A DNA stretch of 62,922 nucleotides, the filler included, from Reticulomyxa filosa (lineage: Eukaryota > Protista > Foraminifera): NCBI GenBank assembly GCA_000512085.1. It is 17 parts of 17 records of this genome, joined end to end, with 100 filler letters (N's around TTAATTAATTAA, not from the genome) between each part and the next. Parts side by side here need not be neighbours in the genome. Positions count along the whole stretch, not along the records: positions 27,873 to 45,030 come from ASPP01005403.1; 16 more parts are not named here. One strand, 5' to 3'. The notes below the pieces were generated by a model. It was given only the letters and a program-made list of their open reading frames with translations, made no database searches and had not been told where the DNA came from. Position numbers and translations under genes: made by a program. This document shows, one piece after another, positions 28,354 through 39,968 of the stretch (positions are counted from its first letter, which is position 1; each line of letters opens with the position of its first letter).

Positions 28354-31300
28354 TTATTGTTGCACGACCAATGGACGTTCTTTGATAGGAGGATTGTCTT
28401 CCAAATGTAATTGGAAGTCAATCCTGCAACGAAGCGTCCTATTGGAATCGCTATCCAAAACAGGAATGCCAAGTAGATTGAGTTGTGCTTCTTTGTGACC
28501 CTTTAATTTTTGGCCAAAGTCGTCCCATTTGAATCCGAATACTGTCTGTGGCTCAGTGCCTTCTTCCGTTTTTAACTTTACCACCATGTGTATATATCCA
28601 TACACTGGGCGTTTATCACTTCCAAAGCATTTCATTGTCAGTTTATTTTTACTTGTCCGAAAGCGAGAAAACAACTCACGATACTCAATATATAAATAAG
28701 CGAACACACACAAACACAAATATAAATATGACATATGTATATTCTGTGTTAATGTTTCTCTCTCTCGGAGTTGTGTACTTTTGATGAGCAATCAAATCTA
28801 AATTGAAAAAAAAAGATGTATACACAACTGTATCGACGTCATTTGTTTCTTCGGCAGCCTGTTGATCAAATGAGCGACTGCGAAATCTTCGAGTTCGTGG
28901 TTTGATAATCTCTCCACGCGTGGTCGACAATGGAGTGTCATTTGTCGGTGTGAGTCCATCGTCGGATTGGTGGTTGAGAAGACGATGTTCGTCGTTGTGT
29001 TCTGTTGTGTCTTCTAAAGGGGATTTCTCCTCGAGGATTTCGAGATTGGCATTACCGGCAAAGATTTGGTTGGTGTCTTTTTTTTTAATTTCCTGTTTCG
29101 ACAGTAACGAATTACTGCCAACACTGCTCGCATCGGCACTTTTGGCCGCAGTGATTGTGACAGGAAGATCAAGTCCCAGAGGAGCCTTTGGCGCTCTTGC
29201 AGCAGGCGGACGAGGCTTTTTATTGTTTGAAAGCGAAGCAGGCGAGTTGTCTTCAACAACGTCGTCTGTCGGAATACTGCTGTTATTGTTGCCATTATTA
29301 CTATTACTATCATTGTTGTTATCATTATTATTATTATTATTATTGTTATTGTTATTGTTATTGTTATTATTGCTATTATTATGGTTGTTGCTATTATTGA
29401 TATTACTGTTGTTAAGATCAATCTGCAATGGAGGTCTATTTGAAGAGCTGACGTTACTGAGTGCAAAAAAAGGCCTTGCTTTTTTTGGATGCAATGCTTT
29501 TTTTTTTCTTTCTCTGACTTGTGGTGATGGCAATAAATCATCGACATTTGCAGTAGCAGCTGGATGTATAATACTTTCACTCTTGGTGGACAGGCCTTGT
29601 GCACTGTCACTGTCTTCTCGATTGAGTTTCGTACGTGCCATCTCGTGTGCATGCGCACGATCATTGTGAACGTCCTCATGTGCCAAGCTAGAGCCTTCTG
29701 CTTTCGTGTGTTTCTTATCTATTGTACTGATCATATCCACCTGCATGGACATGTGCCGATGACTCGTGGTGTCGTCGACTGATGGCTTGGCACTGTGTTT
29801 GGTGCCGTCCATTTCATTATTGCTTACGTGTTGTGAGGGTCTGTCACCAAAGACGACCATCCGTGGCAACATACTGGTGGAAGCCCATTGCATTTCCACT
29901 GCCAACTTTGGCTCTGCTTTCTCATGTGGAGTCGACCACATCAACATTGGATCCTATTTTGTTCGTTCATTCACTTACTATGTTTTTTTTTTTTGGAGTG
30001 AAGTTTTTTTTAAAAAAGTATACGTACCTGTGGGTTAGAAGTGAGTGTGCCTGGAATTCTTTTTTGTAAACGAGAATGGGGTTTGTGTTTTCGTTTGTCC
30101 AAAGCATTTGCACTATGATAAAGCTTGGTCTTTCTCAGTTTGTGAGAAATGGAGCCAATTGCAATCTTTTTGCCGATGCTGTGATACATGGCCACGCGTT
30201 GTTTGGACAATGACTCAATCGTGGTGATGGTGCGATGGTATTGCTCCAAATCCTGCCGTGTGATCATCGTAGGAATGGCTTTTTGCTCGTCGAGCTCATA
30301 CGGAGCGGGAAACTGACACCACGCTTTTAACGGTTGAACGCGGCGATTGCCTCGGATTATCGTTATGTTGTGAATCATTATTACATATCGTTTCGGCCGT
30401 CCGCTTTTATATTTTAAAAAACATGATACATATACATATATGTATATGTACATATATATAAGCAAATGTATATGTTGAGAAGTCCTCTCAAAGCTTTGTA
30501 ATGATTCAAAACGTTTCATCAAATTCAGAAGGCGGTCGATGGGCCAAGATCGGACATTGCAATGTAAACCCACAATACACTGCAGAGTGATCAGACCCTT
30601 TTAAGTGATGGGGAATACACCCATAATTGTGAGTTTTCTTGTACACCCGCGATTGTGTGTTCAATATGCCGATATCATTTTCAGGTAACAGTTGACCTTG
30701 TGTTGTTGGCAATGAATGATACTTTCAATCCACATCCGCATACGCATATATATATATACATATATACATATACATATACATATATATTTTATATAGCATA
30801 TGGTACAATGTCCATTGTGTTGTATACGTTGCGTGTTACATATATGTTTATATATATTTATATATGTTTATATATGTTCATGTGCACAGTGTAAAATACC
30901 AAAATGCGATCAGTAAAAGATGGAAGTCTATCTTGTATTGCTCCACCTTTGTAGAATGGCACTTTGAATTTGGTTTGATAGACACTGTGTAGTCTTTGTC
31001 TGCGATCTTTTTGGGCTTGGCTAGATTGCAAGTCTTTGTTGCTGGCAATGGCCAAAGGGTCGTCATCGAAATCGTAATGGCGGTCAGGCTTCTTTTTATA
31101 CGTCGGATAAAAATCCAATCTCGGAATTGGCTCTCGAAACGGTGAAAAGGCCTGCCCCTTTTCCATTTCTTCTTTCAGCGAATCTTTTTTCCAAATTTTT
31201 TCCAATTGTCCCGTGGACATATACTCTACTGCCTTTTTTTTTTTAAGTTTTCGTCACCAAAGGTTGAAAATAGAGGGAGGGGAAAAATCAAATATATACA

Positions 31301-31645
31301 TATATATAATATATGTTATGAAATGGCAGAAGAAGACCATATAAAATAGTGGTTCCCCTCCCTCCTCTGCATTTTTTAAATTCTGATTTTTTTTTTTTTT
31401 AAAAAAAGCGAAACTTGTTCGCCGGTGATATCTTCCAAACGGTAGTTCAAATCGCCGAACCACACAACGTGGTGGAATTGCTCCAACAAATGAAATGCGG
31501 GCAAACCTAACTTGGAACCAGATCTTTCGACTATGGTTTTGTAATACTCTCTTTTTTGCTATGAGACAACAGGGTATGGTGTATGTTTTGTGATTTGTGA
31601 TTTGTGACAATTGAAAGAAGGAACACGACTACTATTAATTAATAG

Positions 31646-31678
<33 letters not shown>

Positions 31679-32321
31679 TTGTAATAATAATAATAATAAT
31701 GAATAAATAAAACAGTTATCTTACTGGCGCAGCGTTGCACGACATGTGAGCAGAAATGAAACAGATGGAAACTCCATAAATTTTTAAAACGATGCCTGCA
31801 GCTCCTTTGGAACCTTCCATCATTCCTGCGGAGACTGCTCCTGCTCGTTTCAATTGGATCACATTTTTTTTATCCTTTTTGAAGTACACTCCGATTCCTG
31901 TATATTTCGAACTGATAAACGATCCGTCGCCTCTGCCCTCCACACGATCTTCTTTCAATGAGATGCGAAAGCGCTTCACTTTCTTCGGCTTAAAGTACTC
32001 CGTTAACAAGTCAAAGTATCCATCGTCCACGCCTTCTTGGACTCCAAATACATAGACCTGTTCTCACATCCAATCTCAGCGCACTTTCTTCTTACAAGTG
32101 GACACAACAAAAAACAATCATAAACATTCACGCAAACGTAAGTGCTTTACGTCATAATTTGCTGGTACAATATTCATTAATTCGTTCATTTTACTTGTAT
32201 CTACACGTTTTGTCCCATCTTCTGAGGTTATTGTTGGGAAATGTGATTTTGCTCCCATATTCCAAGTACATACCCATATTTTGGTTATTGCTTCGCATTT
32301 TTGTTCTTCTATTTCACTCAT
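28354..32321 (-). CDS. Inositol polyphosphate 5-phosphatase (IPPc domain) with a long low-complexity C-terminal region, multi-exon
   Basis: Motifs in order across exons: KIWVCTWNMG, VFGVQEG, GSKGAAGI...ICFISAH, QFHHVVWFGDLNYR (31440-31480), DSLKEEM...FYPTYKK, PSFTDRIL and SDHSAVYCGF. GT-AG joins checked by hand keep frame (EQ|AVEYM; DET|GRPKRY). Confidence 0.9.
29283..29412 (-). repeat. (AAT/AAC)n trinucleotide tract encoding poly-Asn in the 5-phosphatase
   Basis: NNSNINNSNNHNNSNNNNNNN... in ORF 28685-29947. Confidence 0.9.
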
Positions 32322-35300
32322 TTGAGACTTCGATGCAATTATGCTGAAAAAATTGGAACGTACAAAGGTTCCCCTGGAAACGGGTTTAACAAATTGTAAT
32401 ACGAAAGAGTTGTTCGTTGAGAAACTCCAACAAAAAGACAATAATAAGAAAAGTTAGTCCGAAAAATTAATTGTCTACTCACAATACAAAATTAACAACT
32501 AATGTTATTAAAATTATTTTTTTAAACGCAAAAATAAAAAAAATAATGCAAACTTTATTTTTAGGCTTAACTTAAAAAAAAAACTACCAAATGTAACCTT
32601 AATAGTTTGATCAAAAAAAACAAAACTTTCTTTTTTCCTTGTTATTAGCGTTCCGTCTTCGTCAACCTTGTCATCTCAACAATTTCAAGTTAGTCATTAG
32701 TTCAATTTATTCTGTTATTTCTGTTGATTACTGACTAATTTTCGACAACATATGCTCAAGAAAGTGTAACGAAGATAATGTTAATGATGGAAACTCCATT
32801 CATATATTTCATAGCTCTATTCAACTATCAAACTTTATAATTATATGAACGAATAGTATAAACATAAAATACAATATAATGACTTATATTTATTTTATAT
32901 TTGTATTTAATAATTTTTGGAATTATCAATTTTGGGATTTTGCTACATAATGTTATTATTTGTATTTGTTATTTGTTGAAAAATATATAAAAAATATATA
33001 ACACATTTAACATAATAAAAAGACATTAATAGTTATCCGTAAGTTATATACAATTAGCTTGAGTTAGTATGAATATGTGGTCTAAATGTAATACGAAAGC
33101 TGTTACTAAATAATATTCATTAAAAAAACCAAAAGAATTGAAATAATAAAGAAATAACAAACACTGATAATGCTAAGAAAACAGAAATGTTGTTTATTGT
33201 ATATAAAGAGTTCAAGCATAATGTACCACGAATTTGCATTAACTAGCTTTGTTACATTTGATCTAACTCAAATGATAATACTAAATATATAATTTGAAAT
33301 TACTTTATGATTTTATTTGTTTTCATATTATATTTGTTTTACATTATTCATACTTGCCACTATTCACAATATTTGCGATGTTAGATTAGCAATTCTATTG
33401 TGAATTTAGTGCTATTGTATGCTATAATTGTTTTATGAATTACATGCAGGCATACATTAGTGTCCAAAAGATATTCACTTTGTTTTGCTTATCTTGAGAT
33501 TTAATAGCTACATAACGAGTAAATCGAGCAACTTTTATTAGACTGTATTAATAATTACAATCAGTTTCGGACATTAACAGACCAGATCCAAGTCTATCAT
33601 TTGGAATGGTACTGTAGCCGGAAAATCTTGCAATTCTCAAACATGCTTTCATAAAAATGATTTTGCAATTTGACATGTAAATAATGTTTTGTAAAAATTT
33701 TTGATAGTCAAACATTCATGATAAATATAACATTTATTGAATAATCGATATTACTCGTTGTGTACTTTGATGTCGAAAGAACTAATTTTTTTACATTGCC
33801 AATAATAAGTTTATTTGTAAATATTTTTCAGCTGTCTGTTGCAACTAAGATATATACAATATATACATCTACACATTATATCACTAAAAATAGATTTCAT
33901 TTATGTTGGAATATGAAGTTGCGCTTGTGAATCCAAATCACATTATATTCCAACTAGTATAATATTTGGTGTTATAAATACTGTTTTGTGACTGTATTTT
34001 TTCAGATTTGTACATATAACTAAAATTATAGCAAATCTAATTTTGAAAATATACGTTTGCTTGACAATTTCTTTGGTATATCATTTGCATTTGACATTGT
34101 CAATTCGTAACTTGTTTTATCTTGATTTAATTCAAATAATTGCTAAAATGCATAATTTACATACTTTCTTTTTTTAATTATTATCATATGCTTTCCAGTA
34201 ATTTGATTTGTATTTCTACTATTCTTAATACACAATATTGAATGAGCTTTTAGATAATAATATCTGATTATTATGTATGATTAATTAAATCGACTTTTTT
34301 ATTTGTAGCTAGATATCACTTAAAATTTTCGCATTTAATTCAATATTTGTACTTTTAATAATTGTCACTATGTCGTCATTATAGAACTATAAAGTTGATA
34401 TTGTATAGTTTAAGTTCGATTTTTCTTTATTCATATTAGTTTTTTTATCAATATAATATATTTCATAATTACATGATATATAATCCAAATACGCAAATAC
34501 ATTTCGTTCGATTGTATGTGCTCAAATTTTCATTATATAACTTCAATTCATAACAAATCAGATTTAATGCAATTCTATATAAAATAAAGTTATTGTAATA
34601 ATAAAAGCTTTCTTTAAACATATTATGTATTTATCTTTAGTATCTTTAAATTTAGATATTTTTTCTTGTGATGTAGTATATTTTACTGTATGTTCACAAT
34701 GAAAACATTTTCAACTTTATCAAGATTTTGCCGTTCGGATGCGACGTTGTTACTATTCTCATTTTATTGTATTATTTCTTTGTAACTAAATTTTTCATTA
34801 ATTTGAATTATGTTTTTATTGTTAATTGTATTTTTTACATTTGATAAGTTTGTTCAAATTTTTGTTTAAATAAATAGTATTTTTACTTAACATAATATTC
34901 AAATCAGTTTTATATTTTATACTGTATTTTTTATCGATTAATGTTGTATTTTATTGTGTAATTTTTTCTTGATTTGCTTCAACTAACAAATAACATTTTT
35001 CTCAATATATGATTATAATTATACTACTATTTGTATAAGATAAAAGTTCAATGTTGCATTTCAGTTGTTGAAATTTTTTATTTTTAAGACTTTTTGTCTT
35101 GATTTCTATTTTCTTCCAATCAAAGATAAATTTACAAATAACTTAATATCTTTAGATAAAGATCATTTGGTGCTCTTGCAATTGGAAATTGCTATATTTG
35201 TAAAACATTAACTAAAATTTCACAGTCAATATAATACAAAATTTTTCGTATTTATACATACATAGCAATGCAATGAAGCAGATCATGACGTCAATGAAAT

Positions 35301-35501
35301 AGAAATAAATGCAATAATAACACCACACAACATCAACAGTGTATTGTCTGTATGTACGCATTCAAAACGAACGTCTTTTTCTGGTGCAGTTGCAATTATG
35401 GCACTGACAAGTCCTCATTGTATGTCTGATGTTGCTGGATATTTTTCACTAACAACTAAGTATGCTCATGATCATTGTTTAACAAGTGCGTTTTTTTTTT
35501 T

Positions 35502-35839: not shown

Positions 35840-37569
35840 ATGTCACGTGAATTGAAGTACTACACCTTGGAAGAAGTATCCCGGCATAATAAGGCCACAG
35901 ATTGTTGGCTGATACTTTACGATAAGGTGTATGACGTGACCTCTTTTGTGAATGATCATCCAGGGGGGGTGAACCTAATAGTAGACAATAGTGGCAAGGA
36001 TGCGACGGAAGTATTTGAGTCGGTGGGCCACACCAAAGCGCTACTGACGACAATCTTAGCCGCAGACGCTTGCATCGGCCACCTCCACCCAGACGACCGA
36101 AGGAAGCCATCCACCCCGCAGTCAGCAGCAAAAAGCGCAGCCTCCGTCCGCACTGCAGAGGAAGACAAGTCACCGGCGAAAGTATTGGAAGTCGGGACGA
36201 CGGAAGAGACAGTGCCAGAGTTGGACAAATTCATTAACGTGTACGACTTTGAAAAGTACGCACCGTTGAAGATGACGAAGCAAGGCCTGGCCTATTACAG
36301 CAGTGGAAGTGATGACGAGATAACGTTGCGAGAGAACCAGCAAATCTTCGGAAGGATATGGTTGAGGCCCCGTGTTCTAGGTGAGCATTAAGGAGGAGAT
36401 AAGGGGGAGAGGGGGGGAGGGAAAGGAGATAGAGGGAGTAATTTTTTTTAAAATTGTGAATCAAAATATAAAAATAAAAGTGGACGTAACCACGGTGGAT
36501 ATGCGAACAAAGATCCTGGGCTTTGAATCGTCGTGTCCAATATATCTGTCGGCGACGGCGTTGGGCAAGTTGGCACACGACGACGGCGAGTTGGCCATTG
36601 CGCGCGCGGCGTACAATAGCGGCGTGATTCAGATGATTCCGACGCTGGGCAGCTACTCGTTGGAAGAAATCTGCAATGCGCGCGTCGACAAAACCAGCCA
36701 AGTGCAATTCTTTCAGCTGTACGTCAATGCCAATCGCGAACTGACTCGCAAGTTGGTCAAAACGGCCGAGGCGCATGGGTGCAAGGCGCTCTTCATCACC
36801 GTCGACGCCCCGCAATTGGCACGTCGCGAAAGAGACATGCGCTTCAAGGTCAACACCAATCCTGCCAACGTGCAATCGAATCAATCATCGTCGAATGGAT
36901 CCACACAACAGGGCTTTTCCAAAGCACTCAGTTCTTTCATTGATCCCTCGTTGCAATGGAAAGACATTGCATGGTTTCAGTCCATCACAAACATGAAGAT
37001 CGTGTTAAAGGGTATGTTCTTCGATATATACATATATGTATATACATATATATATACATATATATATACTTGTGTATATGCTAGGCATTCAATGCGCAGA
37101 GGACGCTCTGCTGGCTGTCAAGCATGGCGTTGATGGGATCGTGCTGTCCAATCACGGCGGGAGACAACTGGACACTTCGCGGTCCAGCATCGAGGTGCTG
37201 GTCGAGGTCATGGACGCTCTGAAACGCGCACGTGTAGACGACCGCATTGAGGTGTATGTGGATGGGGGCATTCGACGGGGCACCGATATCTTCAAGGCAC
37301 TGGCCTTGGGCGCCAAGGCCGTCGGCATTGGCAGACCCATGCTATGGGGATTGGCTTGCCACGGACAGCCAGGGGTTCAAAAGGTCATCGATCTACTCAA
37401 GGCCGAACTCGAGTCCACCATGAGGCTCATGGGAACACCCACTCTTGCCGCCATTCGAAAAGATATGCTTGTTGTGGACGACATCTCACATCATGTTACC
37501 TTTGTACCCACGAATGAACTGGCCAGTCAGGTCTATACTCCACTTAAACCACTTACCAGTAAAATGTAA
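35840..37569 (+). CDS. CYB2: Flavocytochrome b2 / L-lactate dehydrogenase (cytochrome): cytochrome b5 domain + FMN alpha-hydroxy acid dehydrogenase; introns 36381-36480 and 37012-37084
   Basis: b5 motifs DCW...KVYDVTSFVNDHPGG and GH. FMN-domain motifs AYYSSGSDDEITLREN, LRPRVL|VDV, FFQLYV, ITVDAP...RRERD, VLK|GIQ, SNHGGRQLD and DGGIRRGTDIFKALALGA. Both introns are GT-AG and preserve frame. Confidence 0.95.
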
Positions 37570-37932: not shown

Positions 37933-39968
37933 TCAATTTGCATTTGCATTATATAAGCTTTGCAATAATCCAACTGCGTTCGGCTTAAATGTTTGAAAAC
38001 ATATTGGACAGACAGCTTTGAGTAAGTGTCCTGAATACTCATTTGCCTTTGAATATTTGCCACACTTTGGACACTGATAGCCCAAAGTCTGCAATCCGGT
38101 TGGCAGATACTTTAAAGCAGCTTTTGCTTGTTCAATGGTATAAGCTTCGTACTCTTTCTTTTCGCATTCTTCAAGGTCATCTAGTGTCCAGAAAACGTCA
38201 AAAAACTTCATTTGTAGCACTTGTCCATCTTTGACACGGAAGAATCCACAGTCAGCCCATGTGTCCCCCCAGGAGTTCATAAAGCGCAAATGTTCGAGCT
38301 CACATGCGATTAAAACCACGGCATGACCACATAGTTTGAATGGGGGAAGGGTCATTTTGATATCATCTGCAGTGAGAATGCCCTTTTTATGCGTTACGAA
38401 AAATTTTTTAAATTTTTCCCATTGCTCGCTGTACAAATGAAATGTAGCAACTACAGGTCTCCTTTGCATGATTGCCTTCCTTGCACCTGCTTCGTCCACC
38501 TCTTGGAACTGAAGACGGTACTTTGGGCAATACGTAGTCAGTACGTCTTTTATAAATGCGCCATTCCATCCATATTCTTTGATTATAGCTTCACGCAACT
38601 CATTAAATTCCGGAACGCCTCCCTTGCGAAACTTGATTCGTGCCATTGCCAAACGAAGAACGGTGGCTACGGCATTGGCATAGCAAGTGCCTCCCTCTTG
38701 GTTTGGGGATTGCTGGGAGGAAATAGCCGCGTTGATATCGGCGTCCAACGAAATCTGTCCAATCATGTCAAACAGAGCGTCGCTATGTTCGGCAATGTGT
38801 CGAACGAGACTGCAAAACTCGTGAATCACGTCCGGATGATTAGTCTGCACGAACAAGCGACTCTGTCCGGATGGAGCCAGTTCCCAGTTCTGCTTCAATA
38901 ACAGGGAAAGAGCGGGGAGGGTGTTAGAAACGGTTGAACTTATGGCAAACATTTGGCGTGTTGCTCATACCATTTTTCATCTTCTTTGTCATACAGTATT
39001 TTTGGTTTTAGAGTCTGCTCTTCCGTCAGCAAACAAGATATTATAGTCACCCCACTGTTACGTATACTTTTTGCCAAAGGAACAGGGTCACCATCCGTTG
39101 CATCCCCATCCGAAATAATCAGCAATACTTTGATTTGTCCTTCTTTTGAATGCACTTCAAACATTTTTTGGGTAAATCTCAACGTCTCACACATTGGAGT
39201 TTGACCGTAAATGTATGGGTTAATATCAGCTAACAATTTTCGCAGCTGCTCAGAAGAGAAAGGCTTTGAAAATGATCCATAGCGAAGGGATAGCTTATCA
39301 ATGACAGCTATAACTTCTTCTCGTGACCTCGCTTTTTTTTTTTGGTCCCACAATAAAGAGTCTTGTGCCATTTTCACAATTTTGCTCGCAATTCTCTTTT
39401 CTTCGCTTTTAGGAACCACCACCTTTGTAGCTACGCTTAATACTCCGTATTTGCAAGCGTACGGCAATTCTTGAATCACCTTTGGCAACGAGTCACTCCG
39501 TTTTGCAAAATTTACAAATAAAAATCCTGCGTCTTCTTCTGATAGGTGCTCTTGAATGTACTGACGGCAATAGGGAGCACCGCCCTCAATTACCATTTGT
39601 ATTAGTGGCTCATGTCCAACAATGCGATGCATTTGAGAGTTATCGCATCTTTTAATGTATGAACTCACATTTTTGATGTTGTACTTGGCCAATAAGGAAC
39701 GACACGTATTTATATCACATACTGGCTCCAAACAATCAAGCAAAGTAATTAAATCGCAAAATCGAACTTCTTCATTCACTAATCCAAAAGCCAATGCAAA
39801 CATCTTCTCGTCTGCGCGACGAAAGCTATTGTCTTCTTTAATCAAGTCGAAGATTGTATTAAATACTGTCTGTGCACGAGTTACCTCTTCTTTGTCAAAC
39901 TTTACTGCGTCCAGATTCAATTTGCTTTTCATTGAACCGGACACATCCATCAACACACCTGTTATCAT
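37933..39968 (-). CDS. vWA domain + papain-like (C1) cysteine protease + C-terminal Zn ribbon; intronless, split by a 1-nt frameshift at ~38965
   Basis: MIDAS elements DVSGS, YGQTPM and IISDGDATD. Protease elements NQEGGTCYANA (oxyanion Q, catalytic C), GHAVVL (H) and MNSWGDTWADCGFF (N). C-terminal CPKC...CPIC. Adding one base at TATGA^GCA joins the ORFs as WYEATRQMF. Confidence 0.85.

Follow-up and report, generated by a model that had tools for sequence, protein, structure and literature searches.

The metal ion-dependent adhesion site (MIDAS) of von Willebrand factor type A (vWA) domains captures an acidic residue of the ligand in integrin I domains and in complement factor B and C2, and in the latter two, ligand binding at the MIDAS both positions and activates a protease. 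A vWA domain is also joined to an alpha-kinase in the VwkA-type kinases of Dictyostelium. In the bacterial MoxR-vWA ternary conflict systems, vWA domains are fused to variable C-terminal effectors, including domains that are common to eukaryotic apoptosis systems (Kaur, Burroughs, Iyer and Aravind, eLife 2020, PMC7159879). Here, we describe a gene of the foraminiferan Reticulomyxa filosa, at positions 37933-39968 on the minus strand of a 62,922-nucleotide stretch of joined genomic pieces (hereafter the window) and within the 17-kb piece that comes from record ASPP01005403.1, that combines a vWA domain with a papain-type cysteine peptidase and a predicted zinc ribbon. We consider it probable, if by no means assured, that this is one intronless gene of a conserved, uncharacterized eukaryotic family, frameshifted in this copy, and that its product is a protease that docks its partners at the MIDAS, most likely in immunity or cell-death signaling.

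The fusion of these modules is the rule and not a peculiarity of the Reticulomyxa gene. A profile of the peptidase-containing half, searched against 1.84 billion representative proteins, returned 2166 matches at E<=1e-3, of which 412 reach E<=1e-30. Lengths of 660-750 aa prevail among the top matches, with the profile covering the C-terminal half, and their sequences show the same order, from a vWA domain with a large insert, through the peptidase, to the zinc ribbon. Judged by these sequences, the fusion defines a large uncharacterized eukaryotic family: both domains are textbook modules, and hundreds of diverged fused members extend from sponges to ciliates. Database entries carry only generic names, such as "uncharacterized protein" for XP_074658688 of the nemertean Tubulanus polymorphus, "VWFA domain-containing protein" for XP_052788317 of the bivalve Mya arenaria and for members from the bdelloid rotifers Adineta and Rotaria, and "hypothetical protein" for KAL4511792 of the ciliate Tetrahymena utriculariae; in the flatworm Macrostomum lignano, the member lies within a fused gene model. 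Database members such as XP_074658688, XP_052788317 and KAL4511792 have the same three-part architecture and length in intact single open reading frames (ORFs), at 35-50% identity to the window gene, and members derived from transcriptomes of the sponge Oscarella pearsei and the foraminiferan Bolivina argentea represent expressed relatives. Tetrahymena, rotifers and bivalves are tractable hosts among the carriers. A shape search of the ESM Atlas additionally returned a 322-member eukaryotic cluster, mostly from Ascomycota, with both VWA and Peptidase_C1, so that Ascomycota are possibly carriers as well. No paper describing the vWA-C1-zinc-ribbon architecture was found in the searchable full-text literature, nor does experimental work on any member appear there; an apparent match, a paper on knotted proteins, is unrelated to the family. 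The architecture is built from known modules, widespread in eukaryotes and undescribed in the literature searched.

In the assembly, the gene is split between two minus-strand ORFs in different frames with a 13-nt overlap, ORF A at 38940-39968 and ORF B (339 aa) at 37933-38952, and every tool searched the two as separate pieces. When P0096, the nearest full-length relative, is aligned by tblastn, its residues 8-359 fall on 39959-38970 and its residues 366-703 on 38952-37957 in the other frame. P0075, P0062 and P0103 behave in the same manner at the junction and cover both ORFs end to end, while intact relatives are continuous across it (...W-x-x-x-A-K-x-M-F-x-x-S-S...). Frame 1 stops at the TAA at 38942-38940, and frame 2 is open from 38964. 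Because intact homologues are colinear across the junction, with six residues in place of 17 nt, the alignments place a single missing base at 38953-38969, inside the vWA fold, and identify the two ORFs as halves of one gene; it is therefore as two overlapping ORFs, not one, that the gene appears in the assembly, and the single uninterrupted frame that is a trait of intact family members is interrupted in the window copy. The layout is as follows.

37933..39968, minus strand: the whole gene, encoding a vWA domain (with insert), a C1-like cysteine peptidase and a zinc ribbon, ~681 codons in two frames; P0096 and P0075 are colinear over the full span, in frame -2 and then frame -1
38940..39968, minus strand: ORF A, 342 aa, the N-terminal five-sixths of the vWA domain; the final three residues and the TAA stop are an out-of-family read-out of the frameshift
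38953..38969, minus strand: the interval that holds the one-base frameshift, context GCCAAATGTTTGCC, 17 nt against 6 residues in intact homologues

As homologues are colinear along its length, the gene is read as intronless over 2 kb. Two candidate introns at the junction were considered and rejected. The first, 38970-38893 (GT...AG, 78 nt), has a length that is a multiple of three, leaving the frame unmended and an early stop after splicing. The second, 38970-38939 (GT...AG, 32 nt), mends the frame, yet it is far below the size of the introns on this contig (~73 and ~100 nt) and deletes conserved residues. Neither a slippery site of the X XXY YYZ type nor one of the AAA-TAA type is present at the right place near the junction for programmed frameshifting. 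The interval 38893-38970 on the minus strand is a decoy in its own right: within coding sequence, it presents GTATGAG, a CTAAC branch-like motif, a pyrimidine tract and a terminal AG over 78 nt, the size of the contig's real introns; splicing it would delete conserved residues, and it could mislead gene predictors. The locus is best annotated as one gene with a frameshift. A first-pass annotation of this DNA, made from the sequence alone, had already joined the two ORFs into one intronless gene of about 2 kb, and the fused homologues bear this out; the break near 38965, a position that it had flagged, is a shift of frame by one base that interrupts the vWA fold and does not mark a domain boundary.

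What does the missing base mean for this copy? We infer that either the sequence or its assembly is in error here, or an inactivating mutation arose very recently. That the frameshift is genuine, leaving a very young pseudogene in an organism in which other paralogues serve instead or the function has been lost, is a credible account of this copy, though not the one we favor. The break is there in the assembly as given, neither a slippery site nor an intron rescues the frame, and the family at large shows paralogue turnover and copies that have lost the catalytic cysteine. However, the break is the single lesion in 2 kb, which holds no other stops, and its AAA/TTT context would make a base-calling error plausible. 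Since the nearest relatives are only 35-50% identical to the window gene, the conserved-position test and branch length were used to look for decay, and not the ratio of nonsynonymous to synonymous substitutions. In a leave-one-out test, the window copy agrees with the consensus at 66 of the 67 strongly conserved columns of ORF B and at 25 of the 26 of ORF A, keeping 91 of 93 conserved positions, and both values are above the family median. It falls inside the family in a 100-sequence tree, beside the Bolivina sequence with moderate support (88 in the Shimodaira-Hasegawa-like approximate likelihood ratio test), on a terminal branch of 0.45 compared to a median of 0.44. Apart from the missing base, the window copy therefore looks constrained at the sequence level, with no decay. 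On balance, we lean toward an error in the assembly, leave a substantial share to a very recent pseudogene and assign the small remainder to other explanations.

The N-terminal domain of this one-gene product is a bona fide vWA domain. ORF A matches Pfam VWA (PF00092) with 28.1 bits against a cut-off of 23.8, and its MIDAS is complete, with DVSGS, Thr257 and Asp287 each at a nearly invariant family column, so that metal binding is predicted from the conserved motif. The intact vWA region of P0096 (residues 2-422), modeled from a 55-sequence alignment, reaches a mean predicted local distance difference test (pLDDT) score of 89.8 and a predicted template modeling score of 0.88. An exhaustive structural search with this model returned Z scores of 17.6-15 to many vWA domains, including those of Mfa5, TFIIH p44, Ku, integrin I domains, C2a and Rpn10. 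These alignments cover residues 1..421 of the model, including the counterpart of the first 57 residues of ORF B. The break thus lies inside the vWA fold, and ORF A alone would be a truncated vWA domain without its last strands and helices. Only ~180 of the 421 residues fit the canonical vWA fold; the remainder is a mostly helical insert. The individual elements are the following.

39933..39947, minus strand: MIDAS DxSxS motif (DVSGS, ORF A aa 8-12), with D, S and S nearly invariant in 55 sequences
39219..39779, minus strand: mostly helical insert of ~170-185 aa (ORF A ~aa 64-250), after beta2, with conserved CDL, GAP and LP..C motifs; high-confidence helices in the P0096 model
39195..39218, minus strand: PYIYGQTP, with the predicted MIDAS threonine Thr257
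39090..39119, minus strand: IISDGDATDG, beta4 strand with the predicted MIDAS aspartate Asp287
38782..38952, minus strand: first 57 aa of ORF B, closing part of the vWA fold (strands and helices), included in the residues 1..421 of the P0096 model that vWA structures match

Bacterial stand-alone vWA proteins of ~250-285 aa in the ESM Atlas align over 225-250 residues of the modeled vWA domain, compared to a canonical core of ~180, and may share part of the helical insert. One bacterial vWA protein among the ESM Atlas shape matches is fused to a DarT ADP-ribosyltransferase domain.

Downstream of the vWA domain, after a short linker with a helix at aa 67-79, ORF B encodes a peptidase that, by fold model, catalytic residues and Pfam score, satisfies the definition of family C1, namely a papain fold of L and R sub-domains with the catalytic Cys at the start of a helix, behind the oxyanion-hole Gln, and with His and Asn in the R domain. 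The match to Pfam Peptidase_C1 (PF00112) scores 22.6 bits (cut-off 20.7, E 1.3e-4). When compared by phmmer to PDB sequences, ORF B aligns with papain and dipeptidyl peptidase 1 (DPP1), and its Cys90, His210 and Asn226 fall on Cys25, His159 and Asn175 of papain. The AlphaFold model of ORF B has a mean pLDDT of 78.9, with 88-98 over aa 80-270. Foldseek matches it to ervatamin and papain at E 8e-7, and VIA places it at Z 16.6 to Der f 1 and 16.0 to cathepsin B, and at only Z 7.4-9.7 to bleomycin hydrolase, UfSP, ZUFSP and ATG4. Across 60 diverse family members, the Gln, Cys, His and Asn of the catalytic site and the four cysteines of the zinc ribbon are invariant or nearly so; TCYA[NH]A, GHAVVL and [ML]NSWG predominate in motif counts, and a few paralogues are without the catalytic Cys. 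The zinc ribbon, in which two CxxC knuckles on beta-hairpins would hold a single zinc ion, is predicted with three short strands at pLDDT 57-81 and matches Pfam Zn_ribbon_8 weakly (E 0.38). The encoded protein of ~680 residues would hence comprise the vWA domain with a ~180-residue helical insert, the linker, the C1A-like peptidase, the four-cysteine zinc ribbon and a conserved helix, with the C-terminal features placed as follows.

38173..38745, minus strand: papain-fold (C1A-like) cysteine peptidase core, ORF B aa 70-260; Foldseek E 8e-7, Z 16.6
38671..38703, minus strand: NQEGGTCYANA, with the predicted oxyanion-hole Gln85 and catalytic Cys90
38311..38331, minus strand: CGHAVVL, with the predicted catalytic His210
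38266..38280, minus strand: MNSWG, with the predicted catalytic-site Asn226
37999..38073, minus strand: predicted zinc ribbon, CPKC (ORF B aa 294-297), 17 residues, CPIC (aa 315-318); all four Cys invariant or nearly so
37939..37977, minus strand: conserved C-terminal helix (LLQSLY); the TGA stop after it occupies 37933-37935

A scan against Pfam gave no match to the I29 propeptide, and the protein opens directly at the beta1 strand of the vWA domain with no hydrophobic N-terminus, although no dedicated signal-peptide predictor was run. As both signal peptide and propeptide appear to be missing, the sequence supports the view that the peptidase is not a lysosomal cathepsin. Much of what the first-pass annotation had read from the DNA in these two domains is borne out here, namely a MIDAS-bearing vWA domain, a C1 core with its Q/C/H/N residues in register with papain, a CxxC...CxxC tail and a protein that has neither signal peptide nor cathepsin propeptide. 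It had also called a large insert in the vWA fold; the insert is present, at ~170-185 aa, and sits after beta1-alpha1-beta2, not after the first strand only.

How does the protein compare with its closest described counterparts? It shares with the papain-family C1A enzymes (papain, cathepsins B/L/K, Der p 1, xylellain) the fold, at Z up to 16.6, the Gln/Cys/His/Asn register and an NSWG motif after the His box. In contrast to these enzymes, it appears to be a cytosolic protein with neither signal peptide nor I29 propeptide, its peptidase is flanked by the vWA domain on one side and the zinc ribbon on the other, identity is only 13-21%, and the Gln precedes the Cys by 5 residues and not by 6 as in papain. 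Complement factor B and C2 resemble it in placing a MIDAS-bearing vWA domain upstream of a protease in one chain, and the structural matches of the vWA domain include C2a and Bb (Z 13.7-15.2). However, the protease of factor B and C2 is secreted and of the trypsin-like serine type, they carry CCP modules and their vWA domain is without a helical insert, so that the parallel is best taken as an analogy of logic and not as whole-protein homology. The MoxR-vWA systems offer a conceptual parallel in their fusion of a vWA domain to a C-terminal effector, whereas the 17-kb piece has no MoxR AAA+ or VMAP partner and the host is a eukaryote without operons. The window gene has no kinase domain, unlike the VwkA-type alpha-kinases, which by description are paralleled by another family member: in P0037 (on an ENA contig of 102 kb), an alpha-kinase (E 6e-43) stands in place of the vWA domain before the peptidase module. 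Such sequences indicate that vWA, alpha-kinase and peptidase are shuffled as modules in protists.

Strict conservation extends to the MIDAS, the catalytic centre and the zinc ribbon alike, and the protein appears to have no secretion signal, which argues that the three act together in the cytosol. A docking-plus-cleavage enzyme would be the most economical model. The vWA MIDAS site would then bind an acidic residue of a partner protein, and this binding could either bring the partner within reach of the attached cysteine protease or switch the protease on. By analogy to the complement proteins, the vWA domain may gate the protease; if it indeed controls the protease, this would amount to a new intracellular principle of protease activation. 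A prediction of the complex between the vWA domain of P0096 and its peptidase and zinc ribbon scored 0.00 ("no answer") and counts neither way.

Further indications of function come from variant architectures. P0085, a single ORF on a Logan contig of 2.9 kb, carries two N-terminal Death domains (E 2e-18), so that some animal paralogues may be wired into death-fold signaling via such domains. P0158 (3.4 kb, also a single ORF) has WD40 repeats after the zinc ribbon, and P0096 ends in a UBA-like tail (E 4e-4 and 8e-4). Fusions of this kind (Death, WD40, UBA-like, alpha-kinase), together with paralogue expansions and a patchy distribution, are typical of immune and cell-death gene families. Because of the Death, WD40 and UBA-like variants, the expansion of paralogues and the scattered phyletic pattern, the sequences suggest a role in intracellular signaling in immunity or cell death. 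Several points weigh against this reading of a MIDAS-docking signaling protease: the fused domains come from few members and offer context more than proof, the UBA match of P0096 is below the Pfam curated threshold, and the window copy, as written, cannot encode the full protein. We put forward more tentatively, as a doubtful extension, that the family is a previously unrecognized class of cytosolic proteases in which ligand capture at the MIDAS, possibly with the help of the helical insert, activates the papain-type protease, serving innate immunity or regulated cell death with a Death-domain link in animals. If true, the complement C3-convertase principle would have a counterpart inside the cell.

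Not all members retain the full set of modules. The family includes tandem paralogues, some of them without the catalytic Cys. In P0167, P0174 (L004:6001-7755) and P0194, the peptidase module occurs without a vWA domain in tandem copies, the later of which have lost the catalytic Cys and His, and a stretch that we read as PDZ-like separates the copies. The 300-aa extension at the N-terminus of P0053 matches SEFIR only weakly (E 0.046), and the extra N-terminal regions of P0053 and P0064 gave no match among PDB sequences. Several near-identical paralogues (P0006-P0012) were also seen, some with a substituted catalytic Cys. On an animal-like contig of 1.98 Mb, a family gene (L002:5568-7701 and L002:8049-8570) is split between two overlapping frames near its N-terminus, either by an intron or by another frameshift, and it adjoins an ORF with motifs that we read as a putative reverse transcriptase of the non-long-terminal-repeat type.

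Could the peptidase act on ubiquitin instead? A deubiquitinase or ubiquitin-like-modifier protease that binds ubiquitin chains through its vWA domain (as in Rpn10) and its zinc ribbon, as well as through a UBA domain in those members that have one, would be in line with a cytosolic papain fold, with the UBA-like C-terminus of P0096 and with the presence of Rpn10 vWA domains among the structural matches (Z 14.5-15.2). We regard this as improbable, as the papain-fold proteases of ubiquitin and ubiquitin-like modifiers (UfSP, ZUFSP and ATG4) reach only Z 7.4-9.4, compared to 16-16.6 for C1A peptidases, which are far closer. Moreover, the sub-threshold UBA match is confined to one member, and the Rpn10 match is no better than those of dozens of other vWA domains.

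The absence of introns over 2 kb had led the first-pass annotation to suggest that the gene was possibly acquired horizontally or by retroposition. The difference in intron content holds, with two introns in the 1.7 kb of a neighboring gene, but a recent acquisition is more doubtful still than a ubiquitin protease. The nearest ESM Atlas clusters by language-model features are phage C1 peptidases, with scores of 0.86-0.87 that are below the reliable level. However, the whole architecture is widespread and old in eukaryotes, and the match to some relatives breaks off at one shared position immediately ahead of the His box; the frame picks up again after 237 nt in locus L001, a sign that this clade has an intron at a conserved site. 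No prokaryotic protein of vWA-C1-zinc-ribbon architecture was seen, the only PADLOC match was TerY (E 0.003), of a generic vWA kind, and NCBIfam gave no more than weak generic matches. There is also no MoxR AAA+ neighbor or match to a defense model around the gene, whose neighbors are a flavocytochrome b2 gene, an inositol-phosphatase-like gene and ORFs without matches. At 38-46%, the GC content of the gene is similar to that of other coding stretches on the contig, no poly(A) remnant follows its stop codon, and tblastn found no second family member in the 17-kb piece. No sign of horizontal transfer or retroposition was found for the window gene, and this origin is not supported. Finally, that the two ORFs yield two separate proteins, a stand-alone vWA domain and a stand-alone protease, is scarcely credible: ORF B does begin with ATG, but its initial Met is the conserved family Met/Leu of the ..AKxMFxxSS.. 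motif and no new start, the break would deprive ORF A of the last strands and helices of its fold, and the intact homologues are single chains.

The vWA-peptidase gene shares its contig with genes of a more familiar kind. Convergent to it and downstream, at 35840-37569 on the plus strand, is a flavocytochrome-b2-type gene with Cyt-b5 (4e-22) and FMN_dh domains in three exons, the GT-AG introns of which lie at ~36380-36479 (~100 nt) and ~37012-37084 (~73 nt), the second being largely a TA/TATACA microsatellite. ORF pieces with Exo_endo_phos2 (inositol polyphosphate phosphatase-like) matches are found at 30861-32441 on the minus strand and are probably one multi-exon gene. Between these two genes, 3 kb of 20-28% GC at 32400-35400 hold no ORF of at least 90 aa. 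Further along, a 420-aa ORF at 28685-29947 on the minus strand, without a Pfam match, contains a long, Asn-rich tract of low complexity, with more than 30 consecutive N/S/D residues, and the opposite strand of this tract reads poly-Leu.

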